Notes under the pieces: generated by a model | What the model was told of the DNA's origin: nothing | Database searches by the model: none | Seen by the model: the letters and a program-made list of their open reading frames with translations, nothing else | Shown: one piece after another, positions 24,468 to 53,460 of the stretch | Position numbering within the stretch: the stretch's first letter is position 1 | Layout: each line of letters begins with the position of its first letter | Translations under genes and position numbers: made by a program | NCBI GenBank assembly: GCA_024704765.1 | Contig: JAKMXF010000299.1 | Location: 1,154,863 to 1,218,862, forward strand | DNA from: Oopsacas minuta | Lineage: Eukaryota > Animalia > Porifera | DNA length: 64,000 nucleotides | Direction of reading: 5' to 3'

Positions 24468-27400
24468 CACAGTGTGGCAATATGGGGAAATAGGCATATT
24501 TTAAAAAACATATTTCAATGCATTTTTCGAATTCTCCATAGTTCAATTAGTACGAAAATATCATTGGCAGCATTAGAAGCAGTTAGGAATCCTAACTACG
24601 CACAACTTTGTTATGTGTTTCTAATAATAGAAATATATATTTTCAAACCTCAAATTCCTATGCCCTAATGTATGTAATCATATTTGATGTAAATATTAAA
24701 TATAAGAGTGAAAAACATCTTCTGATAATAAATCTATATTGTAACAACAATTTAATCATTGATAGGTTAGTCTAGATATTCATTTGTACTTTTTTCCGGG
24801 TGTCTAGTTTGGCCCTCCCAAAGTTATAATTTGGAATTTTTTCTCATTGATTGAAGTGTAGCATCTCTTGTTTGACAAAATTTGACAAAACGTTATTAAT
24901 ATATAAGTAATGTTACTATATTTAGTCAACTATTTAATCACTTTCCAGGCTTGCCAAAAGCTGCCCAAAAATTTATCACGTCATTCATTATCCGGACCGG
25001 ACAAAAATCCGAAAAATATATTTTTCATACGTTTTAAATTTTTTCAGTAAAATTCTATATTTTGCTGGTTATTAGTTATTCCAATACTCTACAATCATAT
25101 ATCATAATGTTTCTATGTTAAAGTAGCCCTTTTGCGGATCATGTCTGTACTAATCACCAACAATGAGGCATATAGTTTGTATATTTCGAATGGAAGAAGT
25201 GTTACAGTCTCTGTTAGGAAACTTATTGAGAACAACCATTTATCCGAAGAAGAAACTGCTACTCTTCATTTAAAATTTAAATCACTTCTAACATCCAGAG
25301 AGGCTTACCGCAGGAAGGATCTTGAAACATGGGATAATATGATTTTCCACTCTACTCATCTAACAATATCCAATCCAAGAAAGAGAATATCGCTTGATCC
25401 TGAATTTTCTTTAGTCACTGATTCTGAAAATCGAAACTTTTCAGAACAGATTGTAACTGAATCCCGGAAGCATATTCTCGAATGTCACATGAAGACTTCC
25501 AGATCGAGACTTGGTGTTCTTTTAGAGCATGTGGACTTTTTAGCAGAGAGAGAAAAGATTGAGCCTAAACAACTACTCGCTCTAGCTTTAGAATTAGTCT
25601 CAAATAAATCCTATGACCGTGATACTTCAGACATGTGCAGAGAAATAATTGATAAGGGATCTTTTAGCGGTGTATTGAACAAAGTACAAATCTCTAAATG
25701 TGCTTATATATTGGACAGATTAGAAATTGGGGCGAGTAAATACACGAATCTGAAAAGAATTCTCAAAGGTGATGTTAAGCTTCCTTCCTATAAACTTGTC
25801 TCGCAATATCGTAGGGAAATAAGCCTAATAAATGAAATGGAAATAGTCAGAGACCCCGAAGCATTGTCAATTGGGACTTGCGTCTCTTATCATTCCATCC
25901 TTAGTCTGACCATTCAACGCTTGCTTTCAACATTAGACCCAGTTCCTGATTCACACTACCCACTCAAAATTAAGATATCTGATGGATTGGATGGCTCCGG
26001 TTGTCATCAAACCTATAACCAACAAAGCAACAATTCTGCATTAAGCACAAAAACTTTCATTTTGTTCGGATTCAAAGTAATATCAATTACAGACACACTT
26101 GGAAATGACGTGTTCTATAACAGCTCACCCAACTCTCCGTTCTGCTTTAGGCCAGTAGCACTGATAGCTCTGAAAGAAGATTATTCTAGTGTAAAGCTTA
26201 TCATGAATACAATAGTCAATCCTCAAACAGACCATATCATACAGGATGGGTTATCTCTTATTGGAGGCCATGCACAGGTCGAGATAGTCCGTTCCCTTTT
26301 TGATACCAAGATGGCAGGATTGCTGGATGGAGCTGGTGGGGCTTCTTGTCATCTGTGTACTGCAACGGATAGCCAAATTAAAAGTTTAGAATGGGCCCAT
26401 TCTGGTTTCCCTATTAACAGACTAATTAGCGACGCTCGGCAACTTTTTGAAGAGGTTGATGAAGAAGATTACTTGAAACTCCCATCAAATCAACGTGTTG
26501 GTATTACGCATCAACCAACTTCTAACATCGATATTATAGCTGCATCTCCTTTGCATGCTTACCTTTGTGTATTCAGGTGGTTCATGCTGTTGATATACCA
26601 TCTTGATGCAGGACACAAGGTATGGGCGCCATCAAACTCGAAAGTAAATTTTTCCATGAAACGGGTTCGAGCTATACTCCAGGAAAGATGTAATTTCAGT
26701 GTCGATATCCCTTCAAGCCAGGGCGGCACTTCAACCACTGGTAACATTGCGCGAGACTGCTTTTTAAATAAGAGAGACTTTTTGACGTGGGCCACTTCTT
26801 CCATTAATCCTTCAGATAAAATATCATTAGAGAAGATCCAGACAAATCTATCTGTTTTGTTAAGACTCCTCAACAGTGGTGACTTGATTAACTGTGACAA
26901 AATGCAAGAATTGTGCAAAGAAACGTACGAATTTATTCTAATTGAGTACCCATGGGCAAGCATCACTCCATCTTTGCACAAGTTACTTGCCCATTCGTTT
27001 CAGTTAATAGGTGCTTATAATAATGGTAAGGGATTACAGAATCTCTCTGAGGAATGTTTAGAATCCTGCAATAAATTTGTAAGGCGGTATCGGGAGAATC
27101 TTGCAAGAAAAACTTCTTTCACTGATAATGTTAGAGATATTTTAGTCAGGTTGTTATGTTGTAGTGACCCCATCTTAGTACAGAATCGTTTGATGCACGC
27201 AAAGAAGAAAAGAGACGTTGCAAATAGCCTCCAAGAGATATTATATAATAGTATACTATCAGATGATTTATGATAATAAGTATATCCAATAGTCATACAT
27301 AATTAAGGGTCTTTAAATTGTACGTTATCAAATAGCAGAATAGAGACCATGACATGCATGTATTATCAACTTTCATAATATCCTCACTAATGAACCACAA

Positions 27401-27579
27401 GTGTTAAAAATTAGAAAATGTCAGTAATTACGTCATAACTAGGTTTATAGTCGTGCTACTAAATAATCATTGGTATTTTTGAAATCTACAGTGTCGATTT
27501 AGTATATGTAAGTATAATTGTGGCGATAATACAGATTCATTTACCTATTTCCCCATTATGGCCATTTTGCCACACTGTG
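24468..27579 (+). mobile_element. Complete RAG1-like (Transib/RAGL clade) transposon, 3112 bp, RAG2-less, with RSS-like asymmetric TIRs
   Basis: Left end CACAGTGtggcaatatGGGGAAATAGG (24468-24494); right end reverse complement CACAGTGtggcaaaatggccataatGGGGAAATAGG (27544-27579). Perfect 5-bp TSD CTTTA (24463-24467, 27580-27584). It interrupts a hAT reading frame that rejoins when the element is removed. Confidence 0.95.
25141..27273 (+). CDS. RAG1-like/Transib DDE transposase, intact, 710 aa from first ATG
   Basis: GLDGSG (D600-like, 25990), NSPFCFRPVAL (cf. NSELCCKPLCL), SLFDTKM (D708-like, 26302), CHLC zinc ligands, SPLHAYL, GGTSTTGNIAR (cf. MNGNFAR), SLHKLLAH (H937/H942-like), LSEECLESCNKFVRRYRE (E962-like, 27061). 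NBD-like segment RKHIL...RL...VDFLAERE. No stops or frameshifts. Confidence 0.93.
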   Translation: MSVLITNNEAYSLYISNGRSVTVSVRKLIENNHLSEEETATLHLKFKSLLTSREAYRRKDLETWDNMIFHSTHLTISNPRKRISLDPEFSLVTDSENRNFSEQIVTESRKHILECHMKTSRSRLGVLLEHVDFLAEREKIEPKQLLALALELVSNKSYDRDTSDMCREIIDKGSFSGVLNKVQISKCAYILDRLEIGASKYTNLKRILKGDVKLPSYKLVSQYRREISLINEMEIVRDPEALSIGTCVSYHSILSLTIQRLLSTLDPVPDSHYPLKIKISDGLDGSGCHQTYNQQSNNSALSTKTFILFGFKVISITDTLGNDVFYNSSPNSPFCFRPVALIALKEDYSSVKLIMNTIVNPQTDHIIQDGLSLIGGHAQVEIVRSLFDTKMAGLLDGAGGASCHLCTATDSQIKSLEWAHSGFPINRLISDARQLFEEVDEEDYLKLPSNQRVGITHQPTSNIDIIAASPLHAYLCVFRWFMLLIYHLDAGHKVWAPSNSKVNFSMKRVRAILQERCNFSVDIPSSQGGTSTTGNIARDCFLNKRDFLTWATSSINPSDKISLEKIQTNLSVLLRLLNSGDLINCDKMQELCKETYEFILIEYPWASITPSLHKLLAHSFQLIGAYNNGKGLQNLSEECLESCNKFVRRYRENLARKTSFTDNVRDILVRLLCCSDPILVQNRLMHAKKKRDVANSLQEILYNSILSDDL

Positions 27580-27761
27580 CTTTATCTTCTGTGATAGAAA
27601 ATCAACTTTTGGAAGAAATCGATGTGCAGTCTACGATTAGAGATTTCTCAAGTCGAAAAGCACGTCAAGTAACACGATGAAATATTGAAAATATTTTAGC
27701 TACCAAATACATTAAGGGTGTTTTGTTATATATTGAATTGTAAGGTAGGGGTAGGCGGCCT

Positions 27762-27801
27762 AATAATTTTGATGGGCCTACCTAGGCCCATCAAAATTAT
27801 T
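27762..27801. repeat. Perfect 19-bp palindromic hairpin (2-nt loop) in the hAT subterminal region
   Basis: aataattttgatgggccta-cc-taggcccatcaaaattatt. Confidence 0.9.
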
Positions 27802-29045
27802 CAGCTCCAGGCCAAATAGGCTGCTAATCCGGTCCTGAATATAGGCAACCATTTCAATACTGGGGCCACTATACTAGAGTATAGTCCGCACGGTAAACAG
27901 CAAATGAACTATATGATTTGTGAATAAGATGTTGACTATTACCGTTCTATTGGTATTAGAGCCTTAAAACTCATAATTCTTTAGTTATAGCCTCAACAAA
28001 CTTTGCTACACAGTATTGTGTTCACATTCCATTCATATCAACGATTTTTTCAAATTATATATTCACCTTTGTCTTTTATACAACTGTCTAGCATTAAATT
28101 TACTGAAAACATGGCGTAAATAGAACTTGAAAACCAGGACTTTTTCTCTCTCTAGAAATAGATTTTTCGATACCGCATAATGAGATATCATACTTTAGGC
28201 AATTTAAATGTGTACTTTGATACCATATTCTTATGTGCCACTAGTACATACACAAGCTCTATCTTACCTATTCTCCAGATATGTGGGGATAATACATTTT
28301 CAGTCGGCCTACTCGTTTTCAAGCCTCCTCAGGGACATATTTAGCGGCATATTAAATAGGCAATGGCATGCTGAGTACAGGTTACTCTTCGCCGAACTGA
28401 TTTGATTTTGGTGGTTATTTGATAGTGTACAAGTTTTATCCTGTATACCTGCGGACAAATACTCAAAAATATTCATTTTCATTTGCTATGAAACCTGAGA
28501 TTAATGTTCATAACGACCCGCTTTGTGTGATATTGTCCTACTGATAAAGACAGGGACAGCGCTAGCCCGCCGCTGTTGAGGCCTAATTCTTTCTTTATTG
28601 AGCTGACATTGCTTGCTTTTATTGGTTAATAATTATCTTAACAAATTACTAAATTTCTTAGTTTTACCTAGGTTATGAGTCAATGGGAGCACTCATCAGT
28701 AACAATACTCACTCTCTGACCGCACTTATCTTGCTCGGTAAATAACGCTAGTTGTTTATACGATACACTAGCCGGTCATAGACATTTCCAAACCACTAAT
28801 TTTCCGATTATTATTGGTACATACAATAATTCTGTGTGCAAATTCACGTAGTATGGAGATTAGTATCTGTAAAGGGCATTCCTTGGTAAGAAATAGCTCT
28901 TTTCTTAGAAAATATGATGCCACCTATTTCAAATATCAACTATTTTCGTATCACCTCTACTTACTTGATAGTTTGAATATATATTATATTCGTCGGCTGT
29001 ATTTATCCCATTTTCTAATCAATCCGAAACCGAATCCCACTATTT

Positions 29046-29780
29046 AACACTGGTCAAACTTTTTCTGGCCTCTAGCAATAATTAAGAAAAAGGTACCAAA
29101 AATTTCACACCTTTGAGAATAGAAAAGTTCTACACCTCTTTGATTTCTAGTTATTTTATTTTTGTTAGAGTGTTTTGCAAAGGGTAAATGAAAAATTTCA
29201 TTTTATTGCACTGTGTCATCTGTAATTAGCCTATTTTGATCTCTAGATTTATTGTTACACAATAGGTACTTCTAGTGTGTATATAATATGGATACATTGA
29301 ATATCTAGTTTAAGAATAGTTATTTATGTACTATATATTTATTAATGAAATCTTTTTTTAATAATCAATTGATGATTACTAGATATATTTCGATTGTTAC
29401 ACCCTTCAAATAATCTTAGAAGATTGGTCTAGACGGATAAATGAGGGTGATTTAATTCCCTGAATCCGAATTTCAACATTTGAACTTTGCTAGCTAAAGT
29501 TTCCTACAATATTTTCCTTTATTTTTATAAAATTTAGACTACCGATAATTATTGTAAACAATTTGGACCTTATATTGTCTCGGTAAGCATTATAACTCTT
29601 ACTTTTTATGGGGCGAGGAGAGTATATATATTTACAATCTATCCCGAAAGCTTAGTCTATTCATGACACTTGTTTAAAAAATGTGGCACTATTCTCGTAG
29701 AAGCTACCTATGCGTATTGAGATTAAACCTAACCTTTCATAATGCTTCCATTTAATAGTGCCACCATTTTCAACAAATTT
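29046..29780 (-). repeat. Inverted copy of the 20850-21610 repeat
   Basis: aacactggtcaaac, aataggtacttctagtgtgtatataatatggatacattgaat and ctgaatccgaattt are reverse complements of segments in 20850-21610. Confidence 0.7.
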
Positions 29781-31680
29781 ACTTTTTAGATTAAACTGTC
29801 CCTACAGATTTTTGTACTTTATTTATCTTGAATGTAAGGTCATTTTTCCAGGTTAATGAAAGTTCACCTTTCGGATGAGGGTATGTGGTTTTTGTATTAC
29901 AAATGTTGTACTATTTTATAGCTCATATGTGAATATATTGACAAATATGACTTGCTAATTGCAACAACATCATCTGCGATTCTCCTATCTTCAGTCAGTG
30001 TTGCAACATTGACAATGACATCTTTACTATCTCACTGGTTACCGACAATAATTCTTTTGTAAAACTATGACATCTAATAACCGCTTATTCCATAAGGCTT
30101 TTCTCGACGTCATAGGGGATTTATCTCCCTAATTGTGGGCAAAAGGTAGCGGTTCAAGGGAATTATGGGTACTTTTCCGTAGCAAATTGGACCATGTACA
30201 TCTTATAAATTGTTACATATACAACGTCAACCTTTTTTCTGACAAATTTATTGAGTCCTTTCAGAATATCGTGGAAACCAGTAAATTGTTTTCTGACTAA
30301 TTAGACCGCGAGCGCTTCTTGCTCATTCAAATATGGATCGCAGTTCACCTTCCACTTCAAATTCAGTATTGAACTTTGCTCCAGATACCACTCCTTTAAT
30401 GCTCTGGCATTCACCTATTTGGTTCATTTGTATTCAATTTACAGCAAACATGAAATTTCCAGTCACTGGTTAACGAGGCCTTATTCTCGAGGTTACCTTT
30501 ATTACCAAATTACTATTTCATGACTGGTCTTTTTACGATTCGATGTGAATTTTCATAATTGGGTGTTGTCTAGGGAAGTGGTTCCCAACCTTTTTACTCT
30601 GGTGACTCGTGATACTTAGAATTGAGGGCATTCGACTCCTTGTTTTAAAAAATTGCGATCACTTCATGAATAATTATATGATGAAATCTAATTATATGAG
30701 CACAACAATTTTGTAAAGAAATTATGTTTAAACTACCGTTGAACAAGTTGAAGCCCAGTACATACTTGCCAACCAGCCTGTAATCTCGCACTGTTACCAG
30801 ACCTCGAGGGATTTACTCAAATTATTGAAGGATTTCACTTAAATCTGGTCTATTTTGTTTTAAGATCTTTTAAATAATAATTACTATTATTGAATCTGAT
30901 CCTAAAAATATTAATTATCATTATGGAATCTGTCACTATACTTTAATGTAGTGCAAAGAGTTAAATTTTATCGAGTTTTTGGTCCCTACTCACCTGAATA
31001 TTCTCAGCGCTATGTGCCTCCAATTCATAGTATAGTTATAATTTTAAGATTTATTATCCATGGCCCGCGCCATTTGAGTGACTAAATGACAAATCAAATA
31101 TGGTAAATATCCAATTTGGATACCCTCTGTGTAGTTTTAAACAGGAGTACTTTGCCTCTGGAGGCTACTATCTATTTACCTCGCTGATATATTTAAGAAC
31201 ATTCTAGCATGTGAATTAATTCAATTTCACATTTCTTAGGAATTAGTATATCTAGTCAAGAGACAAAAAATCAATAAGTTTATACAAAAACAATTTTAAT
31301 CATTTACAGAGGAAATTTGTACTTGGTTGAGAATTTTCTTCGGGCTGCAATTTATTCTAAAAATAATCACATTCATATTTCGATATTTACACGAGTAATG
31401 TAGCAAACTATCTATAAGTTTTGGTCTAAAATAATATTTTGGAGAGAAATGCACATTCAAGCAGCCCACCAGGTACTACTCTGAAAATTACCCTAATTTA
31501 TACGTGACCTTCTAGACAGTTGGCAGTTATACACAGATGTGTTAATTTTACTTAATGTCCGTTCTAAATAGAGGTGGCTATTGAGACAAGTGGCTAGCAT
31601 TCGATAGACTTCGATTAAACGGATTAATTTAACACTATTTGAATGATTCTGTTTTGACCAATTGATCGTATTAAACAGGT

Positions 31681-32105
31681 CAGAGTTGCAAATGGGGAAC
31701 ATGAAGTGACTTATGACCCATGTGACCCATCCTGACCAATGATGTATTTGATTATTATAAGAAAAATATAATTTGTGTCTTTTGTTTACCACAATCATGA
31801 ATCCAAGTTGTTCATATATCCTTCTAGCACTATCGGACAGCTTTGATAGTCTCTGGCAACCTTGCATTACGTTGAGATATTATAATATGCCGAGCATTGA
31901 AGTCACTGAAGCTTTATTGATGAATGCATTTGCTATTAGTACCTAAAGAAATATGTGTATATTACTCACACTTTATGATATCCCAAACTTTCAGTATAAT
32001 GACCATGATTATCCACAGGCCACTCTAAAGTAATACCTCGTACGCATGTATTGTATATGTAATGATGAATAATACATGATGGTTCATGACCCATTTGCAG
32101 CCCTG
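31681..32105. mobile_element. hAT-type MITE (425 bp)
   Basis: TIRs cagagttgcaaatggg / cccatttgcagccctg; subterminal tgaccc repeats; degenerate 8-bp TSD aaacaggt / aactaggt. Confidence 0.6.
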
Positions 32106-35100
32106 AACTAGGTTGGCCCGATTAATCTGTCTCTTTATTAGGCGGAGTCTACTGCATTAGTTATTACAGTGAATGTAGTTATTGATTGCCATCAAAGGGA
32201 CTTGTCAAGGTTGACCTTATGAGAAGTACACGCTATATATAGTGCCTGTTGCATAAAGCTAGTAGCCATAATATAGAGTTAATGGCCGTTAAAGACATGT
32301 TTAGTGCCTCATAGGACCAAAGATTGTGGCTGCTTGCTGCAATACACTATCATGAGAACTTTATAATGGGAAATCGGAGGAGTTTTTTTACATGACCGTA
32401 ATGTGCGGATGATCATTATAAATAGGTGGTAGTCAAGCGTTAAGCAGGTATGACAATACCCAATTTCGGCTCTTTCTAAACAAAATTCATTGCCCATCAG
32501 TTTTCAGTCTGATATGGATTCTATCATTGAATATTTGCTGTTGATAAAACAGGAAATATTTAATGATAGTACAAAAGTGAGAACTAGCATTAAATATTTT
32601 GCTGTTTTTTCTATTTTCTTCCCTGAGAGTTTCGTACTACACCTATGGGAGATGCGACTCCCACGGCTCGCCCTGCCCAATTCCTTGCTTTCATTTCCTG
32701 TACATTGAAGTGCAATCCCTGCTTCATTATAGCCATTAAAATCTATTTAGATTAATTCTAATAAATTCAGAATAAATATTTTAGGTATATTTTGAGTGGT
32801 GGATCCGCGGGAGGGGGTTGGGATATATCTCCCCCACCAGGACAAATATGTATGATCTCTAATGATAATAGTATTGAAATATTATGTCAATATGCTAGAA
32901 TAGTAATTGGGCTTGTCTTCCTAACCAAGTCCTATATGCAAAGGGTTTTCTGAGCGACTTCGGAGGCTTACAGTTGTCAATTTATCCCTCCCTCTAACAA
33001 ATCCTTTACCTAACACTGAGAGAGGATTATTGTTGTACTGTTTCAGTTTAGCTTGATTCTTTTGAAAGCGAATGCAATTCGCCACTTAAAATAATCATCT
33101 TTAACGTCCCAGGCAAAAAATACCTTTCCCAAGTTGGATATTTGTAGCGGGCACATTGATGCTAAAATATACTAGTGGATTTCTCTTAGAAGGCTAGGGA
33201 TATCATCGATTTTGCTAATGAGAACTTGCTTTTCACCAGAAAACTTCACCTTGTCCTTGTATCAAGGTATTTAGATACTTTCGTGCCCTTTCCCTTTAGT
33301 CTCACACACCCCTTTTCGGCATCTATTGTACCCAAGTGGAACGGAATATGATAAATATTTTCGTATACTAATAATTAGTTAAGATGAAGTGTTCTAAGTT
33401 GTTTTATATAAGTATTAATTCCTACATATATTTGAATTACATTGCGACTTGGATGATACTTATCTCGAGTTTATTTTTATAGATCAGATCGGAAATAACT
33501 CAATTTCAGATCTTCACTGCAACATTTCCGCATCGCTTTGATGTTGCATGATCTAACTGAAACTATATATGTAAAAGTGTGCTCATGACTTGAATAGTAG
33601 AATGATCAAGCATTCGGGGATTCAAATTTGCTGAGAGTCTATTTCTGTCGTGAAACATGGATATTTGTCAGAAATTGACTCCCTGGGCCAAATCTACAGC
33701 CGGTCTATATAACGCGTGCTTACTAAGAAATTAACATTGAAACATATATGCAGAATACATATCAAATTCCTCAAGCACTATATGTCTTCTAGAGAAATTA
33801 TAAGAATTTTCAAAATCTACTGAGAATTCCCATAAACCAGACTTGAAGGAGTGAAATTGATGTTATTATCGGAATCAATAGATATGATGGACCCTTGTCG
33901 AATTTATTCTTCTGTAAAATATTTACCGTTCAACAGTGTACCCTAAAGATGCTCTCAATTAATTACAAATTATTTTATATCTTTTGTGTTTTCGATGTGA
34001 GATATATTGATTTCAGGAGTATGGATTTCTAAAGTGTTATTCATTAATCTTTAGAAATTTTTTGATTGTCAAATTTTCTTAGAATACAGGTTATCGAAGA
34101 AACAAATTCTTGTTAAATGGTTGTATTATTGTGAATTCCAAGGTTTTTGTTCTGTATATAATTACCTTGCACCCTTTCATTGCTATTAGAAATTATCTTC
34201 CAGCCCAGGTGTCATCTTTTCCATACTATCATATTCTTCTGATCCAGTGGGTCTCAAAGTGTGCCGTAGAGTGCCCTAGGAGGCGTTGGAAGCATACTTG
34301 CGGGCGGCGATACCTTAAGGTGGCTCCACTGGGATTTTTACGAAATATCCAGAATGGTCGAACCATAAGTTATAACAGAATATTTTTAGATGAATATCCA
34401 ATAGTCATTGTTAATCAACAACAATTAATGTAAACGAAGTGCCCATAGTATACGATGATTATATCAACTGCTAAGAATTGAATATGGCTTAAAAGAATAT
34501 GTTCTAGAAGAATGTTCAGTCTGAATCTGGATGTTTGAAGATTGCAATCAAGAAAATGCTTTCTGGAACCATGCACTACTTCTTCAGAGAAATTTCGAGT
34601 TGCTGAAATAGAATCTTTATGAAAGGTTCTATTCCAGGATTGAGTGAAATTTTCTCATTTCTCGGATTAGAAGTTGGTAGAGGAAGAGTATATGAATGGA
34701 AGGTCGACTTCTCCCACGTCTCAAGATCACTCTTCTTCAGGTAATACTCTCTTGATGAGCTAAGGAACTTAAACTTATATAGAATATCATCATGTTCTCC
34801 ATGTGAAATATTTTTATCATTTTTTAGGAAACTGAACAGTTGCTTTAGGATTTTGCCCTTGAAATTTAGACAATATATGCTTCATTGTTGTCCCCAAAGA
34901 GGCCATTACTTCACTAGGAGCTATTATTAGATTTAAATGATTGAAAATATTTTCATGTATCATCTAAATTTACATGAGGACAACAAGAATAAATAGTATT
35001 TACTTGAATTTCAAGATATTCTAAAAACATATTTCCGATTTTCGTCCGATCCAAGCATTGATGTACTCACAAATATATTTGTGCGCCCGGTAGCGTCTGA

Positions 35101-35589
35101 AAATGGGTGCAAAATTTCAAAAATGTGAGCACTACGTATAAGCTCTTTACAATAAATTATCTTCCTCTTTTGTCACCTGAAAGATGCAGAACTCCAAACA
35201 GTAAATTAGAACTAAAATATTTCCCTCCAGGCCATCAAAACTAGACAGCCAAACAAATATTTTGGAAAAAATAATGATTATAAATGTTGTATAAACTGAT
35301 CTAATATAAGAAATAATCAAATTGATGATTAACTACAAACATAATACAGTATATATTGGGAACAAAATCGTTGCTAAGGTAGTAGGTATTTACAAATGCT
35401 GTTAGCTATTTTAAATATTCTGAATTATGCTTACTTTTGCTCGCCGTATTTAAATCCATATAGGTCATACATGCAGTAATCAATATTGTCCTACTAACTC
35501 AACGATAGAGATTCACAATAACGTAGTTAAATTCGTAATTGAATTTTGCCCCTTACGTCATACACTATGTATTTCATACGTGAAATGCA

Positions 35590-40814: not shown

Positions 40815-43038
40815 CACTGTCCAACAAATTTTCATCAGTTTTGCTTCTGGAATACACGGTAGTGTTTCTTATGTATTCAAGTACCCTGATTCCAAATATC
40901 CAATCAGTTTTTCTCTATCAGGCAGAGATTTTGTAAAATTCGGAAATTTCCAAAATCACATTTCCATAGGTCTCTATAGAATTTGTAATTGTATATGTAT
41001 TAATACCTTCCGTATATATTGTCTAACAATTCAAATGTTCTTAAAATTTATAGAATATTATCTGCTCTTTCAAGAGGAGATTATCTGATTGTATTTGTAT
41101 TTCTTTCTTTTCAGTAATGTCTCGTCGATGTTCAAACCCAACCGATTCTTTCTGGTATATTTTTGGAGAATTTACTACAAAATTTAAGCTGAGAGACATG
41201 TCTCCCCTTGTACACAAGGGATGTGAGCAATATTTCGGTTGCAACATTTGTGATTAAGATAAGCCTTGGGTACCTCATTTTTGTTGCTCAAAATGTGCAA
41301 TAGGACTTAGTAAATGGCTAATTGGCTCACGTAATTCAATGCAATTTGCTATTCCCATGATATGGAGGGAACCAAGAGATCATTATATTGATTGTTATTT
41401 CTGTTTAACTGATATAATAGGAATTACTTCTAAGACCAAAAAGAATATATGTTACCCCAAACTTCAATCTGCGATTCGTCCTGTTTAGCATTTTACAGAA
41501 TTCGAAGTACCTAAGCTTAAGAAAGTTTCCTTTGATGACGATACTGTTGAATGTGTTATGTTAGTCAAGATGATGAGGAATTTATACCTCTGCCTATGCC
41601 ACCTGATAAACCAGACTTCCCCACATCATTAATCAAAGTGAGCTGAATGATTTGGTTCGAGACTTGAATTTGACAAAAAGATCAAAGTGAATTGCTTGGG
41701 TTAAGATTGAAAGGTTGGAACTTATTGGATGAGGAGGCTAAAGTTTCATTTTTCAGGACCCGTCAAAGTGATTTCTCTGTACATTTTGAAATGCAGGGCC
41801 CTCTTTGGTATTGTAACAATGTGGATCGTGTGTTGGAGTTTTTAGGTGTTCAACACGAACCATCAGAGTGGCGTCTCTTCATTGATTCTTCTAAGTACAG
41901 CCTCAAGGCATTCGTACTTCATAAAGGTAATGTATTACCATCCATACCGATAGGTCATTCGGTACACATGAAGGAGTCTCATGAGAATATGGATATCTTA
42001 TTGTAACTGATCAGATATGACTATTACAATTGGCACATCTGTGGTGATCTGAAGGTAATTGAACTTTTGTTGGGTATGCAACCTGGATACACGAGATATT
42101 GTTGCTTCCTCTATGAGTGGGATAGTAGAGCAAGGCAATCCCACTATATAGTTAAGGAGTGGCCTCTACAATATCAATTAACTGCTGGTGTAAAGAGTGT
42201 AAGCTGTCAGTCCTTAGTATATCTAGAGAAAATTCTGTTACCACCTCTACACATAAAACTGGGTTTGATGAAAAACTTTGTAAAGGCGATAGTAGAATAC
42301 AATAAAGAAGGAGAAGATTTCAAATACCTCAAGGACAAATTTCCTAAGGTCAATGATGCTAAAATCAAGGAAGAGGGTATTTATAGGTCCCCAAATTAGA
42401 GAACAATTCAAGGATCTAAACTTCGAAGCATGTCTAAATTCTGTCGAGAAAGCACCATGGAATTCTTTCAAATCTTTAAATGAGAACTTTTTAGGAACTA
42501 AGAAATCACCAATTTATGAAGAACTTGTTGTGACACTACTTGATGCATTCAGAAAAATGGGTTGTAACATGTCTCTAAAAATACAGTTTCTTCACTCACA
42601 TTTTGCAATTTTTTCCAGAAAATCTAGGTGCTGTGAGTGATGAACTTGGTGAAAGATTTCACCAAGATATGAGCACAATGGAAAGTTCTCTCCAAACATG
42701 ATGGCTGATTATTGTTGGTCACTAAAAAGAGGTATTCCTGATGCCACATACAAAAGAAAATCATATTCCAAGCATTTCTAAATTAGTATAATAAATGCTA
42801 CACCAATTGACAATTTTCAGTGTAATTTAATGATAAGTGTGCATTTGATTAGCCAAACTAAAGAGATATATTTATAGGAATACACTGGGGCAATGGTAAA
42901 ACAAAATATTGAATTTTTCAAAATCCTTACCTGATAGAGAAAAACTGATTGGATATTTGGAATCAGGGTACTTGAATACATAAGAAACACTACCGTGTAT
43001 TCCAGAAGCAAAAAATGCTGAAAATTTGTTGGACAGTG
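40815..43038 (+). mobile_element. Chapaev3-type DNA transposon, full length (2224 bp), transposase decayed (about 41117-42781)
   Basis: About 125-bp near-perfect TIRs starting CACTGTCCAACAAATTT. N-terminal MSRRCSNPTDSF, WREPRDHYIDCYFC, WRLFIDSSKYSLKA, ICGDLKVI, GYTRYCCF, LPPLHIKLGLMKNFVKA and VSDELGERFHQD. Flanks tta / ata (imperfect 3-bp TSD). Confidence 0.88.
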
Positions 43039-43556
43039 ATATCAACTGAACTGCATGAGTTACTTTGATCAAATAGCGCTGGTTTTTATGGATCAAATTA
43101 CCGACTAATTTGAGTTTATTGAATTGGAAATATATTCATCTATATTGGATTTATTCATGCAAATATTACTAATGTTTACCTAATCTGCCTTAGTAGAGTT
43201 TGCTAACGAAGAAATGAGTTTCTCTATGTTTGAGTTTTGTTGGATTTCGTACCTTCTTATGAAGGATTTCAATTCGTATCCTGAATTAGGATCTCGAATA
43301 TGTTCCTACGAGTGTGCCAGAAGCTTGCATAGGCAGGCTTTCATCTATAGTGCCACCCGCGCCAATAGGCGCGTTTTTCCAAAAATTATGTAATAATGTA
43401 ATGGGTTATGTAACAATTATAGAGGTCAATTGAATTAAATTTAAGTTTATATGAAGAATTCAGTTGACTAAGGTAATTGTGCTAGAAGAGAAAATGAATA
43501 ACGATAAATATACAATATTAGGTTAACAGTTTATTATTAAATCACAATACACGGTA

Positions 43557-45695
43557 CAGTCTACTCCGGTTAATCGTGTGACCGGTTAATCGGGTCAGCC
43601 GTTTAATTGGGTCACTTCTTCTTGCAATGAAATCATGCCCATAGAGCTAATACAAGATATTTTCGGTTATCGGGTAAAATTTGGTGAATCGGGTCAAATA
43701 TTCGTTTAATTGGGTCATTTTTCATGATCACCTGGTTACATTACTTTATATCAACCATGTTTGAGCTCACTTTTAATGCAGTTTCTTGTATAGCCTTGGG
43801 AATAATATCAAACTACGGTACTTAAAAGCTAGTACGTAGAATGGTGATAAGATTGAACAAGATTTAGCAACTATGTATCCATTTCCTAATTCGAATACGA
43901 TCATATTCTTGGGGTGGTTCGTTGTTTGAAACGTTACTGCTTTTTTACTTACACGTACGTATCTTATTTTATAACTAGCTAGAAAATGGCGTCAAGAAAA
44001 GAGCTATCTCTGTCAGATAAAAAATTCCTTGAAAAATAATATTACTCCAACCTAACACAAGTCATCGAGTATTGTCTGACATGTTTGATGTATCGAGATC
44101 CACGATCGGAGACTTCTTAATCAAGAACAGGATTTGCGAGAGTTACTTTTACAAAAGGAGAGGATGAAGCAAGGAAAACGCCAGAGCTCAGGAAAGGATC
44201 CAGAAGTAGAGGAAGCTTTAAACTAATGGTTTAAATCCGTTCTAGACAAAGGAGTGAGAATTAGCGGTGTGATACGTACTCAGGTCCAAAGCTGAGGAGT
44301 TTGCAGTGAGATTGGGAAATCCAGGTTTTGTAGCAACTGAAGCCTGGCTATCTAGATGGAAAGCAAGATAAGGGCCAAGCGAATACATGGTGAAAATGCA
44401 GTTCCGATTTCGAAGCAGCTGAATTTTGGGTATCAACGGTACTACCTCAACTTTTGCAAGAGTATACTCCTGAGAACATTTACAACGCCGAAGAAACTGG
44501 TTTGTTTTATCGAGGAACACCGGATGGTTTCTTGTGTTATACATACGAGCAGATTAGTGGTTCCAAAATGGCTATAGAACGTATCACAATACTTTGTGCG
44601 GCAACATGTCCGGTAAAGACAAACTGAAACTTCTAATGATCAGTAAGAGCAAGAATCCAAGATGTTTCAAAAACATTGACATAGACACCCTACCAATCAC
44701 TTACTTCTCTAACCAAAATGCCGGATGATTAGGATCATATTCCAAGAATGGGATTCAGTACTCAGGGAAAATTGCCGTCAGATTTTACTGCTCTTGGACA
44801 ATTGTCCTGCCCATCCTCGTATTAGCACGTTTACAAACATTCGACTAGAATTTCTACGAGCAAATACAACGTCGCTAATCCAGCCACTAGACCAAGGCGT
44901 TATCAAGAACTTGAAATATTTCCACAGACAGGAAGTGGTTCAGATTACTATTGCTGGTATTGATGACAGTATAGTCAGCTCATCAGCCTCAACAATTGAC
45001 ATAAGCTCGAGAATCTCGCTCCTGGATGCAATCTACTTCGTTGCCAGGAGCTGGCGGAAGGTGAAACCTGAGACAATAAGCAACTGCTTTAGAAAATGTG
45101 GCTTTAGGACACAAACCTCTTCTAGTGGAGAATCTGGAGAAGAACCAATTTTTGATGGGAGAAGAACTAGCCTTAACAGGAGTCTTGAACGGTGAGCATT
45201 ACTTGAATATCGACACCGATATACCCTGCTTTGAAGAAACCCAAAACTTTGATGAGGAAATTATAAACGAAATTGTTAGCAGGAGGATATGTTTAGACGA
45301 CTATTCAGAAGATGATGACGTTGATGATGAGTTTTCAACCGATTATTGCACATCAAGTTGCCCGACAGTGCATTCAAATCGTGCAACGGTACTTCTAGAG
45401 CAGGGGGTCTCTGAAGTACAAAATGCAGCGCTGGATATATGTGCAGAGAAGGTTTTCAATAGAGTGTAATCAAGCAAGAAGCAGACTACACTTGATGTGT
45501 TCTTCCCGAACTAATTTACATATCGATACTAGTTGTACTAGATTAGACCATAGTACTACCACTGTAGGGATGCCTTTGCCATAATTTTATATATTTACCC
45601 ATCTATATATTGTACATTTTGGTTAATTGGGTTCTCCGCTTAATTGGGTCAAAATGCTCTGGAACCAAAGTGACCCGAATAAGCAGAGTCGACTG
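43557..45695 (+). mobile_element. Tigger/pogo element, full length, decayed CENP-B-type HTH plus DDE_1 transposase
   Basis: TA|cagtctactccggttaatcgtgtgac ... gtgacccgaataagcagagtcgactg|TA. Motifs GKDPEVEEAL, NAEETGLFY, ILLLLDNCPAH, ANTTSLIQPLDQGVIKNLK and ETISNCFRKCGF. Confidence 0.92.
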
Positions 45696-47829
45696 TATTT
45701 GTATAGTGAAAGGTTGTAGGTGACACCTCTGGAATGTAGTATTAACCGTATTATAAGTATGGATATATCGTATGCTTAAAATTTAAATTTGATGCTTCGA
45801 AAATTCAAATAGTCTAGGGGCGTAAGTGCAATCGAGAACTCATTTAGCCGGGCTTCATAATATGCTGGAAGAAATCCTGTGTGCAAGGTAGGAGTGATGC
45901 TCGCCTAAGGCAAATAATCTACCACTAAAATATATGTTTCTTAGACTTTTTTTCCTAAAATGTAAGAACACAACCCTGTCATTGTACTATTTTCTGAACA
46001 ATCTTCATAGAATCTTTGATATCTGTAGTAGTTGTGGGCCATTTCAATTTTCCAATATGTAGATGGTATACTAGAAGATCCATTTAGAAGTACATGTATG
46101 AGAGTTTAGTGGAAAAGCAGCGATGATATTAACCTTAGAAATAGGTTGATTGGTTATATAGTAGTGCTCATTAAATGCAAGTGCAAAGAATCCCTCAATA
46201 TCTTAAATTTCTCCTAATAACTTAATCGCATCAGTAATTGTTCTGTTTAAGGGAAGCCGTTTTCAACTAAATCCATATCTTTCAGGACTGGCTTTCCCTG
46301 CATCGGCTCATATTGCAGCCATCTTCCCATTGGATATGGTTCCAATAACTCCTATCCTAACAATACCATCCTCTAAAGATATTTCATTTTCCAATATTTC
46401 GTGGGATTAATTTATTCTTCCATAATCACCAAATACTTTTTCGCATTCTTTTGGAGCACAAAGAAATACTAGTTGTTGTGAGGAATGCGAATTTGTGTAT
46501 TAGAACTATTCAGTTTTATTATGTAGAAATAGAGAGAGTATAGTCCTTTGCATTAATATTATTGTGAATTTGATTGTGATGTTATGGCAGCCGCTACCTC
46601 AAACCATCGGCTATCCGGAATTTGAGTGGGAATAATTTAGCATTAAGTGGATTCACTGTTGTAAGGATCCTTTCAGGAGTTTGTTGGCCTTGAAGGTAGT
46701 AAGGGGTTTGTACACCAATCGGTGATAAAGATTAGGATATTGCAGTATCATATCTCTTGATATTAAGACATTCCATATATCTACACCTCTCTGAGAGGGA
46801 ACCTTTATGTTCCCTAACAATAATGTTTAGCGAAGTTTGGTAATTTCCTTCCTCCCATTTCATGCATATCAAGTAGTAATAGCGGCTTGTCAACATAAAT
46901 CCAATTTTTTCCACTATACATCACTACTGGTAATCTCCTTTCTTAGCTTGATAATTTTGTAATTATCACTCTCGTTACCTTGCTATACCAACGCTGGTAT
47001 TTCTAGAAAAGTAGAACACTCCATGATTGCAGTTTCCCTAATCTGTTCTAGGATAGAATTCATTGTTGTAATTGAAGAGAATATTTGTCCTTTTTACTTT
47101 CGATTCTATTGGAACAGCATATGGATTTGATTCGCATGGAATTTTGTGATTCCACCATTTCGAATTCAATGAATCAACACTTTCTTTGGACATTTTAATG
47201 TTGGGTTTGATCTTATTCAATGTATAATGTCAAATCATTCTGAATCAAAATTTATGCTAAATCACTACGTGTGTTCATAGGACTTAGGCCATTGTTCTTG
47301 TGTAGATTTTTAGTTATATATTGTTTACTATCAAATACTTAAATGTGATTTATTTGTGACGTAATAATCGCATAGTGTCTTAGCCTTTGCTCAAAACAAT
47401 GACTTCGGGCATTTGGTAGATTGATGGGTACCTGTGATTCAAATTTCCACCATCAAATATGTATATTTGCTGAGCAGTGGCTATTTTTGTGATTTTTTGG
47501 AAATCCAAAATATGACAACGATGCGATCACTTCGTCATTGGTGTGGAATTTTCTCGGTACCTGAGTTTGTCCGAACCTGGACCAAATACCCCAGTATACC
47601 AAAGATCAGCCCTGGAGACAGGCTAGGATTGAGGTTGCCGCTGGTCCGTTTCATACTTTCTACGAGGTGTCCATATTACTGAGCCTGGCAAACCATGCTA
47701 TTAGTTCAAGCCTGTATTGGGACCAGCAGATGGCCAAACCAACCGTACTGGGGTGCTACGCCTATGATATACTAATAGGTAAAATATTGTATAATGTGAA
47801 AGTTCCTAATCTCAATTTTTAGAGTCATT

Positions 47830-50264
47830 TACAAGTCATGCTTACGGCATTTCAGAAGAGAAAAATCAAGAATATGTGACTACAAATGAATATCCAGAAG
47901 AAATGTATATTTATACGCTAATCAGAGTGAGGCTGTTCAAGCGCGTCTGAGTCATACAAGATCGTAACTGAGTTATTATGAGTTGAAGTTTAGAGAACGA
48001 TCTTCACCAGTACATTTTGAGATTATGCGGCACAAGTAAGTGTGCAACGTCATCTAGACTTGTCTCCATCTATCCTTTTCCTGGAAACCTTAGAGAGCAG
48101 GTACATCAAGCGATCTCTCAGCAAATTTCTTCTTGAGAAAGCGGAGAAATGCAAGAGCTCATCCGACATCATGTTTCCAAGATCTGTAGGGTATTTACAA
48201 CTAAGACTCCCTGCGCTTGAGACTACTTGATCTGCTGTTAGGATTTTGCGGTTCCTTAAAAACCAAACCTTGCAACAATGCATGTGTGTGCCTCCAGCCG
48301 CTTCACTAATTGAGCATTAACATTATCTATTATCATTAAGATTGTGCTCGTACGGAGTTTGTTGGATGGAGTCTGTGGCAATTCAGGAACTGAGCATGGC
48401 TCATCGTACAGTGATTTCTCTGGCGGACCCGCTAACCGCTTGACAGTAATGATCACATTCGCTGATTTTCTTCCCCTCAGCCTCAAATTCTTCAAGTCTT
48501 GTCCGCAGCTTGCCTATAAATTCTCTTAAGGACTCGTAGATTGCAACGTGGTATTGAGATCCGGGTAGCTTGATTGCAATACCTGACTGCTGGTGTGAAA
48601 ACGATTCAGTATTTGGTGCCACGCAACAGCAAGTATACCGGTTTCGAGATTCCTCATTTAGGATGAGAGTACAGGCTTCTTGTCGAGTGTCTGCTTTCTT
48701 TTCCAAGCCTTTAACGATTGCCTCTAATGCCTTGTTTATTTCACGCTTTTTTAAGCCTTCGTAGCATCTTACGTACCGACCAGCGGTATCTGACATTCGT
48801 TTGACCATTGGTAGGTCTTTGTCCACAAGTTGCTCTTTTAGAAGTTTCCAACGATAGGTCGAAATTCCGAAAAAATGAGTACAGTGGAAGCCATTTAATC
48901 GGGACAGCTCGGGAGTCAATGTTTTGTCCCGTTAACCGATTATAATATACTTAAGTATTCTAAACTAGTTTCCATGGTCTCAAATCATATCCAGAAATAC
49001 CTTATTACACTACTACAAAATCTTGATTATAAGAGAGTGAGCAGAGTTAATACTATTAGTTTGTAAATTGCAATTGTATCGGTGTTGTATTGTATGTTTG
49101 TAGAATATTAAAATTCCTAGTTCTATAACAAACCATGTTACAATCATTCTGAATAAATATACAATCGTTTATTTGGGATGAAATCCCAATGAAGTGAATA
49201 TAAGGGTAATATTCAGTTAATCGGGTTAAAAAATCCCGATTAACCTATTCGATGTCCCTATTATCTGGTGATTTTTCTAGGTAATAATCTGTTCCCAAAT
49301 CATTGTCCCTTTTAAGCGGATATCCCGATTATCCGAGTCACGATTAAGCAACTCCCACTGTATAACCACCGAAAAATCGAAGAATGCAACAGCCAGCTGC
49401 AGACCGACAAACCAGGTCGAGTCAACATGCAGCGTATGGTACATAATCAGCTAGCTAGCTTTGTTGTCGAATGATGGCTTGTATGCCCTGATATTTCCAA
49501 CTCCTGATGCTCGCATTATCGTGCGACTAGCCGCAGTAGTCAGTATATCAATGTCATTCGCTGCCAAGAAACTGAACCAGTTTTCCGACAGCTCCTATCC
49601 ACTAGGACCCTTCTTCTTCCTGAAGGTTAGGAATCTTTCAACAGGACCCGTTTGCAGAAGGTATCGAAGATTATATGTGAATTGATCAACATGAGAAATA
49701 TCTCGTCAACTTGACTTCCGAAAAAATTTGATCAAGTAATTATTTTCCCATTAACTGGATGAATTCGTCGCATATTGTCTTAAACATATAGGAAGTGTGA
49801 CCCAGTCCTTTACTCTGATTCATGTCCTGTTGTAGAAATGGATCGAATTTTCCCAACAGGTCCAATATACCGAAGTAATTCCCATTTCGTGGTGAACCGA
49901 TGACCTCCTCTGAGTGTCAAAATTCTAAAGCGCGCCTTAATAACAAACGAATGGTTTCTGCCACCCGCTTTAGCACAGCATGCCAATAGTCTGGATCTGC
50001 ATTGGCTTGTCTAACACGTTCTGCATCACCATTATACTCTGTGTGCTTCATTTTTAGGAATTTCTCCATAGCCACCCGGTGCACCGAACTTCTCTCCTGT
50101 CGTGCAATCTATTTACATACGTTTTCCAGTCCTTACATCACACTTTACCAAACACTGAGACATCTGCCATAGGTTTGCAGGCAAAACAGTGCACTGCGTT
50201 CTCCGATGGTGAGTAGCAGAGCCAGGCCCAAAATGTTGCTGTTTTGTAAGCTGATGAGTGTATG
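47830..50264 (-). mobile_element. ZMYM1-like hAT remnant interrupted by a pogo MITE; RAG1-like element 2 inserted at its 5' side
   Basis: Minus strand: WAWLCYSPSENAVHCFAC, FFGISTYRWKLLKEQL...VKRMSDT, TILMIIDNVNAQLVKRL...ARFGF, KYPTDL...DELLHF and MTQTRLNSLTLIS...ILDFSLLKCRK. Confidence 0.8.
48882..49360. mobile_element. pogo/Tigger-type MITE (479 bp)
   Basis: TA|cagtggaagccatttaatcgggac ... gtcacgattaagcaactcccactg|TA; interrupts the hAT reading frame. Confidence 0.75.
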
Positions 50265-53200
50265 CACAGTGGGCTACTAGGGTACATTAGGCCCAAATTC
50301 TTACCTTCAATTTATACCATTTTGAATTATGAATTAGATTCTAGATATATTCAACAGGCGATATGTAAAGTATCAGATGAAACAGTTAAGTATTTCTATT
50401 TTTGTGGTCAATCAAATGTAGGACTTCATTGCTGTCTTCTATGTTTATGCATACATTATATAAATGACTGAAGCTATTTGAGTAATCTGTTGAATTTATG
50501 ATACATACTATTGTTTATTTACATGCTTTCCAAGCAAAGGGAGTGCGTTGAATTTGAATCTATCGTTGAATTTCTTCAGGAGCAAAAGAGTAATCAGATA
50601 TTACGTATACAATACTGTGAAGATTTTGTAGAAATTTCTCTCAGCCATAAGCCATCCTGTTGGCAGCAAAATTTGTTTCCACTAGTTTCCACCCTGAATT
50701 TTTGTATGTATTCTTGTCAAGTAATATAACCATTATATTAAAAGTACAAATACCGCTTCATTGCGCAATATATTAAATATTGTCAAATTCCATTCTCACA
50801 TCTAAGTTGCTATGGTACAATGTAATGTAATTACATGGTAATTTTACACCAATATAACGTAATAATTATTTATATATACTGCACATTTCGAGATAGCATA
50901 CAAGTTCATTAATTTGATAACCTATTAAACCTCTAATTATCAATTTAAAGATGGCTGAAGCAATAATAGTATCTGAAAGCCCGAAAACACGTCTTGACTT
51001 GGCTATCATATTGAAGGTTCACGACTATGATATCAATCAAGCAGCAGATGAAGTGGTGGGTATACTAAATCTCGAGGAAGACAAGAGACATTCTGTATAC
51101 TCTCTAATGTCTAAAGTGCCATATAATTTCAGAAAGAGTAAGAAATCTAATGAGAGCTTAGATGGTGAGTGTGGAGTGCAAGTATTACATGGATCCCTGT
51201 TAAACCTAAGAGTACCCAATCATCCCTTTCTGTTTCAGGCTGTAATATAGAAAGCGGTGCTATATTGGTTCCAAATGTAGAGAGGAGAAAATCAATTGAT
51301 GACATTCAAGTTTGTTCAAAGAAGATAAGGCTTGTTCAGACTGGGACACTTACTTCCATCCGTCAGTTAGCACAACTTAAAATATTTCAGTTATTCACTA
51401 CGTTGTTCTCCTCTTGTATATCGTAGCTGTAGAACATATTGGTTTTAAAGGAATCGCAAATATCGCTTGGAAAATCTATAACGAAGAATCGATACCAACC
51501 CTCAGTAAATAGTTTTTACCAGAAAAATCAACATTCTTAGCGTATCAACTTAAGCTGGGGAAAGGAAAATGGAGAGATCTTAAATATTATCTCAAATCAG
51601 AAGGCCTCGTTTTGGCAACTTGGGAAAAAATTAGTGAAATTAGAAAATCAATTGTTTCAACATTCGACTGGTATCCAAATGTTTCCAATCCTATAGGGGT
51701 CTATATGTCTTACTCATCACATGTAATTTCTCTCTTTGACCGGTTGTTAAAAGAGTGTGTGCTAAATTTTCTTGCACCACACTTCTATCCATTAACACTC
51801 AAAATCAAGCATGGACTGGATGGTTCTGGATCTCATTCCTCTCCTGGGTTATTATCAGACTTGAATATAGACCGATCAAATTATATTGTCTTCATGATTT
51901 CACCCCTTCAGGTAATAGATGGATTCGGGAATGTTCTGTGGGAAATAGGCATCCTAACTCCTGTTTTTCCAACCAACCAGTAGCACTTATTTGCCAAAAG
52001 GAGACCATTGACACTGTGATAGAATTGAGCAAGTTACTAAACCCTGAAATTGTTTCATTAAATGAGAATGGTTTTGGTCACCTAAATGGTCATGTTAAAG
52101 TAGAAGTCAAGGCTTCAATGTTTGACGGAAAAACCTTAGCAACAATGACAGGTAAAGGAGGAGTGCCATGTATTGCCTGCAAAGCAACCCGAAGTGATAT
52201 CAATAACATTACGAAGTTGTTTGCTGGTTTCCTTTAGATTGTTCGATAGATGATATCAAAGAGACAGCCCGTCAGTTAACCTCTGATAGAAAAGAGCTGA
52301 TGAGCTACAATACAAAGCAACGGTGTGGGATTACACACGAACTTGCAAGTGGCATTGATGTACTTCCTGCAGCACCTTTACATTCTTACCTAAGGATTTT
52401 AGATTGGTTTGTGAACTTTATCTACCGAATTGCAGCAGGAAGGTCCAAGTGGACTGAAGATCAAATGGTGCGAGATTATCGAGGTTTAGTATGCAAGCGT
52501 ATCCATGAGCTTACGAACTTATTATTCGACCAACCAGGGGGAAGTGGGAACACAAGCACTGGTAACATGGCAAGAACATTTTTTTTCATATAAAAAACCC
52601 TGTTTTAGGATCGCTTTATCGTTTGTACCAATGTTCATAGAGATGCTCCGAAAAAGATTCACAGGAATCTATCTGCATTGCTCAGAGTTGCTAATAGTAA
52701 TGAAATTCTCGATGTAGATAGATTTCGTGTGTTAAGTCAAGAAACCTACATACTAATCTTACAAACCTTTCCCTGGGTATCTATTAGCAATACACTCCAC
52801 AAATTCTTGGCTCATGCCCATCAGTTTATTGAGAGAAATGACAGGATAGGATTGTGTAGTCATTCTGAAGAAGGGTTAGAACAAGGACATAAGTTGATCT
52901 GAGAGTTCTCAACACATTTTGAGCAGGAAATCAGAATTTCTAAGTGGGTTAAGTGATGTTGCAATGAGGCTGTACATCTATGGTTGTCCAATTCTGAATG
53001 AAAAATTCAGAAGGATCATCATTTGTTCCACCTGTGGTCAAGTAGGCCATCAAAAGAATTGTCTAAAAAACACGCCAAGTGAAAATGTTACAAATAATAT
53101 TGATAATGAAGATTCTCTCCTTCAAAATTCCATAGATGAACTCTTCTTGCATTTAACATTAATTCATCAATAAGATATTCGTATGTTAGTTATTCTTCAG

Positions 53201-53460
53201 TTACCATAGCCATAATATATTCATATTCTATTTCTTTTAATAAATCTCAGTTTAGTGTATATCTAGATTTCTGTATTACTGTATATGGTAATTAAGATTA
53301 CGTCATATATTGAAAACCTGATGTGATACAACAAATTGAAATCAACAAAAGGCTGCAATAGTCGACTTACTATACAGTAATAATGTATTTATTAGCCTAT
53401 TTCTAAAATTTGAACGCGTAAGACCCTAATACTAGTAATTCGCAATAATAGCCCACTGTA
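50265..53460 (+). mobile_element. Second RAG1-like (Transib/RAGL clade) transposon, 3196 bp, decayed
   Basis: Left end CACAGTGGGCTA...ATTAGG (50265-50291); right end reverse complement (T)ACAGTGGGCTA...ATTAGG (53425-53460). Terminal base altered; the left flank GTATG is not duplicated on the right. Confidence 0.85.
50951..53173 (+). pseudogene. RAG1-like transposase pseudogene (several frameshifts and stops) with C-terminal Cx2Cx3GHx3C knuckle
   Basis: KIKHGLDGSGSH, NSCFSNQPVALI, ASMFDGK...CIAC, AAPLHSYL, GGSGNTSTGNMAR, FPWVSISNTLHKFLAH, HSEEGLEQGHK and CSTCGQVGHQKNC. Confidence 0.9.

Follow-up and report, generated by a model that had tools for sequence, protein, structure and literature searches.

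How the 12/23 rule arose is still an open question in tracing the V(D)J recombinase back to a transposon, and current models place both asymmetric ends and a nonamer-binding domain (NBD) already in Transib-like ancestors. In 2005, Kapitonov and Jurka described several Transib families with ends resembling recombination signal sequences (RSSs), RSS12-like at the 5′ terminus and RSS23-like at the 3′ terminus, such as Transib5 of Drosophila and Transib2_AG and TransibN1-3_AG of Anopheles, and concluded that the 12/23 rule is derivable from Transib structure (PMC1131882). Tao et al. (2022) described a “bipartite conserved structure,” found all Subgroup I Transibs to be asymmetric-ended, and recognized in Transibs an equivalent of the NBD as well as a CCGHC-type tail, CTT1 (PMC9435367). 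The ends of the algal RAG-like (RAGL) element AanRAGL consist of a 13-bp element, a spacer of 4 or 13 bp, and a 10-bp element, which is a difference of 9 bp (PMC9435367). PflRAGL-A of Ptychodera flava combines a heptamer, a conserved region next to it, and a distal element whose length asymmetry is 10 bp; from the same work by Martin et al. (2023) comes the proposal that the ends of the ancestor were asymmetric and that it had both a CCGHC tail and an NBD, Transibs being cited for each of these traits (10.1101/2023.08.20.553239). Here, we analyzed a 64,000-nucleotide stretch of the hexactinellid sponge Oopsacas minuta (“the window”; GenBank assembly GCA_024704765.1, contig JAKMXF010000299.1, positions 1,154,863 to 1,218,862 of the forward strand), in which two divergent Transib transposons, element 1 and element 2, share asymmetric ends whose 9-nt length difference recurs in their relatives. 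Coordinates below are those of the window.

Element 1 (24468 to 27579, forward strand) is a complete Transib-type transposon of 3,112 bp with one intact open reading frame (ORF), flanked by perfectly matching duplications of the target site (TSDs), 5 bp long and of sequence CTTTA, at 24463 to 24467 and 27580 to 27584; termini and TSDs were read directly. Its left end consists of the heptamer CACAGTG (24468 to 24474), the 14 nt TGGCAATATGGGGA, and AATAGG (24489 to 24494), and its right end, read inward on the reverse strand, of CACAGTG (27573 to 27579), the 23 nt TGGCAAAATGGCCATAATGGGGA, and AATAGG (27544 to 27549). At either end, AATAGG forms the last 6 nt of an 11-nt distal box, GGGGAAATAGG, which occupies positions 17 to 27 from the left terminus (24484 to 24494) and positions 26 to 36 from the right terminus (27544 to 27554, reverse strand). 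The long “spacer” also contains a motif specific to the 3′ end, CAAAATGGC, at positions 11 to 19 from the right terminus (27561 to 27569, reverse strand). Element 2 (50265 to 53460, forward strand; 3,196 bp) is an aged and degraded Transib copy that belongs to another lineage and has no TSD (flanks GTATG and CTGAA). Its 5′ end is CACAGTG (50265 to 50271), 14 nt, and ATTAGG (50286 to 50291), and its 3′ end, on the reverse strand, is TACAGTG (53454 to 53460), 23 nt, and ATTAGG (53425 to 53430).

These four end sequences, with their coordinates, are as claimed in an earlier reading of this DNA (the original prediction), which had also placed an AWTAGG box 14 nt from the heptamer on the upstream end and 23 nt from it on the downstream end of both elements. 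Exact matches to CACAGTG-N14-AWTAGG and to ACAGTG-N23-AWTAGG number two each in the window, versus 0.00 and 0.01 expected from dinucleotide-preserving shuffles, and all four are the element ends.

Both elements are cut-and-paste DNA transposons of the Transib superfamily. The hallmarks of this superfamily were found, namely, a RAG1-core-like DDE transposase, a 5-bp TSD, terminal inverted repeats (TIRs) with a CAC heptamer, and no RAG2-like gene; the convergent RAG1L/RAG2L pair of RAGL elements is absent, since neither element contains a second gene. Element 1 holds no room for a RAG2-like gene and no trace of one. The transposase accounts for its sole long ORF in the sense direction; two more ORFs of at least 80 aa run antisense, inside or overlapping that of the transposase. 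The description of both elements as RAG2-less and RAG1-like was thus borne out, by profile and fold matches to HzTransib and RAG1 as well as by gene content.

The transposase ORF of element 1 (25141 to 27273, forward strand; 710 aa plus stop) is listed as a hypothetical protein in GenBank. As a single sequence searched with phmmer against the PDB, it matches HzTransib with an E value of 1.2e-26, and a family profile matches HzTransib at 1.4e-45, amphioxus BbRAG1L at 1.7e-16, and vertebrate RAG1 at about 5e-14, so that the protein is closer to HzTransib than to BbRAG1L. The best Foldseek matches of the AlphaFold model (mean predicted local distance difference test [pLDDT] score of 68) are likewise HzTransib (6pqx; 1.6e-18) and RAG1 (8e-18). 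Its catalytic triad, D281, D388, and E641, aligns with D600, D708, and E962 of RAG1 and varies little or not at all within the family. A Pfam scan of this protein returned nothing, and a precomputed match to PF26100 (RAG1_RNase_H) was not recovered.

In element 2, the transposase survives as remnants between 50951 and 53173 (forward strand), pieced together from the ORF list and tblastn matches in frames 2/3/2/1/2, with at least four frame changes and at least five pieces. The aligned pieces are about 30 to 36% identical to the element 1 transposase by tblastn, which is what the “only scattered motifs” of the original prediction amount to. The remnants end in a CCGHC-type zinc-knuckle tail (CSTCGQVGHQKNC) that matches zf-CCHC weakly, at an E value of 0.0085, under the Pfam cutoff. 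Of 10 lineages, 5 have such a tail (P0002, P0003, P0004, P0011, and element 2); element 1 and the remaining lineages have none.

To assess how far the end layout extends, paralogous loci with 35 to 46% protein identity were taken from O. minuta and four other ENA assemblies, and their ends were located by TIR and target duplication. All 11 complete elements, from about 10 families, are asymmetric with the short end upstream of the ORF. The layout is 14/23 in nine of them (element 1, element 2, L001, L002, L004, L005, L006, L008, and L009) and 13/23 in two (L007 and L010); in a further locus, L003, the 5′ part is rearranged and the 23-type end alone is kept. Perfect 5-bp TSDs flank L001, L002, L005, L007, L009, and L010, and L004 and L006, like element 2, have none. 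The heptamer is CACAGTG at both ends of nearly all elements. Counted to AWTAGG, the long spacer is 23 nt in all elements and the short one 14 or 13 nt; counted to the full 11-nt box, the spacers are 9 and 18 nt, and the two ends differ by 9 to 10 bp, not 11. In a single-gap scan from 0 to 15 nt, the best-fitting insertion at the right end was 9 nt in 9 of 10 elements. The 9-nt offset and its polarity are kept across about 10 families at this level of protein divergence. Fixed offsets among relatives had been set beforehand as the test of the original prediction, and neither symmetric nor random ends were found. Slippage at an ATGG repeat, which had been considered unlikely as the origin of the 9 nt, is excluded because the same offset is present in families that lack the repeat.

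Relatives were recovered by word-indexed searches from O. minuta and the ENA assemblies alone, and an exhaustive profile search gave 4,551 representative relatives, many of them covering the NBD region. A scan of JGI metagenomes with the family profile found no relatives. One distant NBD-covering relative, a protein of 794 aa (P0081), occurs in identical context in TARA and in another metagenome (L016 and L017); no recognizable CAC-heptamer ends and no TSD were found at these loci, which may hold a fixed or domesticated copy.

The anatomy of the ends was resolved by the mean pairwise identity of blocks across families, where about 0.3 corresponds to unconstrained DNA of this composition. The heptamer reaches 0.97 on the left and 0.84 on the right, and the distal box reaches 0.61 (left positions 18 to 27) and 0.72 (right positions 27 to 36). 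The left spacer (positions 13 to 17) is at 0.29 versus 0.49 for the right spacer (positions 13 to 26), and DNA further in on the left (positions 41 to 120) is at 0.31 to 0.32, the right end not being comparable there. Each end is therefore composed of the heptamer CACAGTG, 5 to 6 nt common to the two ends of an element, and a distal box of about 11 nt that starts at position 17 at the 5′ end and at position 26 at the 3′ end; the invariant feature is the 9-nt difference in length. The box is G-rich and GGGGAAATAGG-like, not an A/T-rich nonamer (ACAAAAACC-like). The proposed AWTAGG motif is indeed conserved at the offsets claimed for it, as part of an element longer than a 6-mer. Likewise, the view that the spacers are mostly different holds for the left spacer, but the right one contains at positions 11 to 19 a conserved CAAAATGGC-like motif, CRAAAWGGC-like in most families. 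The additional 9 nt thus do not vary freely. The ends also differ beyond the box, with an A-rich, CAAAAT-like sequence at left positions 29 to 35 (5′ end only) and YATTT at right positions 37 to 41.

At the 3′ end only, positions 55 to 105 from the right terminus form another block that is conserved in register, observed in L001 to L009 and elements 1 and 2 (27475 to 27525 and 53360 to 53405, respectively). On the sense strand, it consists of two TCGAT-like repeats, then CCNATAT, and then ATAATACATTT, and its mean pairwise identity is 0.52 versus about 0.31 at the equivalent left-end positions. Polyadenylation or protein binding at a subterminal site could be its role. No consensus structure was obtained for it with RNAalifold, and since a short inverted repeat within it falls in two registers, depending on the family, covariation is not claimed.

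The element 1 family is very young and has moved very recently with exactly these ends. The cluster of its protein at 90% identity has 33 members in the O. minuta genome. Four more full-length copies, 99.8 to 99.9% identical to element 1 over the 3,112 bp, lie at unrelated sites, each with its own perfect 5-bp TSD (AAGTA, GGCCG, CATTA, and ATTAG); the five copies together, element 1 itself being locus L012, are 99.8 to 100% identical, and their TSDs are all different. The short left and long right ends are kept in all copies, one of which (L011) has lost one G of a G-run and is 13/23. Contigs from public runs contain the empty-site form, in which 24466 is joined to 27594, element 1 is absent, and a single target pentamer is present; these contigs represent other, paralogous copies of the repeat that hosts element 1.

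Over 23800 to 28200, contigs from two other organisms were also found to be mostly 90 to 99% like the element 1 coding region and its hAT-like flank, with little or none of the 5′ untranslated part of element 1 (24682 to 24975). More than one species therefore harbors the element 1 family or a close relative.

At the N terminus, the sponge proteins exceed the solved HzTransib chain, which aligns only from profile position 177, by about 175 residues. Within this extension, aa ~100 to 182 (25438 to 25686, forward strand) resemble the RAG1 NBD. A profile of this region alone has as its best PDB match the RAG1 NBD crystal structure 3GNA (E value of 4.7e-05), and its top 16 matches are all RAG1, aligned at residues ~393 to 445. 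The positions aligned to R393, R402, K405, and R407 of RAG1 stay basic. At the GRPR/K motif, GRP is not conserved and (T/S)RK(P/H) stands in its place. By these matches, the transposase bears a homologue of the RAG1 NBD that could read the distal box. The first 70 residues (25141 to 25350) form a helical N-terminal domain conserved in the family; it is modeled over aa 1 to 76 with a pLDDT of 90, and a Foldseek search of the PDB turned up nothing significant for it (lowest E value of 2.4).

Set against the described systems, the sponge elements show a type of asymmetry already published for Transibs, and their interpretation is only partly new. With the RSS12/RSS23-like Transibs of insects they share a RAG2-less RAG1-core transposase, a CAC heptamer, a 5-bp TSD, and the polarity of the ends, the short-spaced end being upstream and the long-spaced end downstream. 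They differ in that the insect elements carry an A-rich nonamer (AAAAAAATC) at 12/23, whereas the sponge elements carry the G-rich GGGGAAATAGG box at 14/23 with a heptamer that is exactly CACAGTG, and in their host. Of the Subgroup I traits, the sponge elements have the asymmetric TIRs and, in half of the lineages, the CCGHC (CTT1) tail. The catalytic core is best matched, in both sequence and fold, by HzTransib from Helicoverpa zea (PDB 6pqn and associated entries), but nothing in the solved chain of HzTransib aligns to the NBD-like region, and its ends hardly resemble a nonamer, if at all (PMC4840297).

The comparison extends to elements and recombinases that contain RAG2. In AanRAGL, the distal element starts at about 18/27, versus 17/26 in the sponge, with the same 9-bp difference; AanRAGL, however, has a RAG2-like gene, which the sponge elements lack, and the distal sequences are unrelated. 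PflRAGL-A is similar in its NBD, CCGHC tail, and asymmetric ends and dissimilar in having RAG2L, GRPR/K in its NBD, and a nonamer-like element that is AT-rich. With the vertebrate RAG1/RAG2 system and its 12/23 RSSs, the sponge elements share the consensus heptamer CACAGTG, a DDE core, zinc sites, and a homologous NBD, and the distal box lies at nearly the same distances as the nonamers, which occupy positions 20 to 28 and 31 to 39. In contrast to the vertebrate system, there is no RAG2, no GRPR/K, and no A/T-rich box, the difference is 9 nt rather than 11, and the long spacer is conserved in sequence.

The original prediction had seen in these ends a possible independent or ancestral version of the 12/23 rule. 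Independence does not stand, given the precedents of 2005 and 2022 (PMC1131882; PMC9435367), and ancestry, although a reasonable inference, had already been drawn (10.1101/2023.08.20.553239). The new features are the sponge host, the G-rich distal box, and the conservation of a motif within the long “spacer.” Sponge Transibs were found mentioned neither in PMC1131882, in the text and supplements of PMC9435367, and in 10.1101/2023.08.20.553239 nor in the other literature searched, and no experiment on the end-pair preference of a RAG2-less, NBD-bearing Transib was found there. The work on HzTransib deals with an enzyme that lacks this domain and with ends that have no nonamer-like element. The sponge elements extend NBD-bearing, asymmetric-ended Transibs to Porifera, early-branching animals and a phylum missing from the key surveys consulted.

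On balance, we consider it somewhat probable that, in these Transibs with bipartite asymmetric ends, the offset is held by boxes read by the NBD-like domain and by a short/long synapse. The NBD-like domain, as a dimer like that of RAG1, would bind both distal boxes, and the synaptic complex would be built for one short and one long end. A synapse of this build would lead selection to hold the offset and would favor pairing of a 5′ with a 3′ end without RAG2. The noncoding DNA near the ends is randomized in the elements that keep the 9-nt offset. By analogy with RAG1, we infer binding of the box by the NBD-like domain and take the offset as a probable signature of an asymmetric synapse.

Several observations weigh against this interpretation. 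GRPR/K, with which RAG1 contacts its A/T-rich nonamer, lacks conservation in the sponge proteins, and their box is rich in G instead. At a pLDDT below 50, the model of the NBD-like region does not confirm its fold or dimer, and the confidently modeled N-terminal helical domain is a second candidate DNA-binding module and a candidate reader of the box. The 13/23 variants (L007, L010, and copy L011) point to a tolerance of at least ±1 nt, and the conserved motif in the long “spacer” may mean that spacing alone is not what is selected.

The stronger proposal, that an NBD-bearing Transib transposase alone, with neither RAG2 nor GRPR, enforces short/long pairing through a G-rich box, is put forward tentatively and is the less likely outcome. 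If it were true, a 12/23-type rule would be a property of the ancestral RAG1-like transposase that was retained in sponges, and the recently active element 1, with its 710-aa protein, would be the first system for a biochemical proof of a RAG2-less pairing rule. Element 1 is a clean test object for this, having a single intronless ORF, exactly defined ends, and young copies, alongside about 10 divergent relatives that reveal which end positions are constrained.

A different explanation, possible though rather doubtful in our view, is that the asymmetry marks the identity of the ends instead of setting a spacing rule. The 9 additional nucleotides of the 3′ end, with their CAAAATGGC-like motif, would be a binding or bending site recognized by the N-terminal helical domain, the zinc-knuckle tail, or a host factor, and the two ends would be functionally different, whether or not the distal box is read by the NBD-like domain. 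A parallel is offered by P elements, whose two ends have unlike spacers separating the transposase site from the terminal repeat and are not known to substitute for each other. The higher identity of the right “spacer” than of the left, the different sequences past the box, the block at positions 55 to 105 conserved at the 3′ end only, and the presence of a confidently folded N-terminal domain all speak for such a role. However, the long spacer of element 2 lacks the GGC motif and yet keeps its length of 23 nt, and length is held more strictly than sequence. This explanation is, moreover, compatible with a model in which the NBD reads the box.

It is improbable that the asymmetry is an inherited relic, that is, a single ancestral 9-nt insertion at the 3′ end that is merely tolerated, with neither a pairing preference nor selection on length, a DNA-binding domain on a flexible linker being able to reach both positions. 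All the elements are homologous, so one ancestral event would be enough, and 13/23 variants do exist. Neutral indels, however, should have spread the lengths, and the offset is 9 nt, once or twice 10, in every family, although at 35 to 46% protein identity unconstrained DNA has drifted to background (0.29 to 0.32); the same 9-bp geometry also occurs in the RAGL element of a pelagophyte alga (PMC9435367). Finally, the notion that the AWTAGG boxes are accidental matches in AT-rich DNA, or that the ends are misplaced, deserves practically no credence and is already refuted: although patterns with two mismatches allowed are not clearly enriched in the window (4 matches versus 2.4 expected and 6 versus 2.6) and are uninformative, the exact patterns occur solely at the four element ends, the termini are pinned by TSDs in 10 independent insertions and by the empty site, and every relative examined has the same layout.

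Besides elements 1 and 2, two fragments of Transib transposases were identified on the reverse strand, at 34496 to 34827 and 45982 to 46722, bringing the Transib-derived sequences in the window to four. They cover aa 28 to 131 and aa 241 to 514, respectively, and are 27 to 59% identical to paralogues. About 740 bp upstream of the first fragment, at 35534 to 35569 on the reverse strand, lies the sequence CATAGTG followed by TATGACGTAA, GGGG, and CAAAATTC. This is either a left end in which the AAATAGG part of the box has been deleted or a chance match; as a possible third left end (heptamer at 35563 to 35569, reverse strand), it has no box.

The repeat around element 1 (23800 to 24467 and 27580 to 27915) is a DUF4371/hAT-like element, inside which element 1 is nested. 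With the insertion removed, the hAT-like reading frame of the host repeat ends in MGQNRLNALYLL and a stop codon. The summed contig depth over these hAT-like flanks is about 30 to 40 times that of the single-copy DNA at 28063 to 28200.

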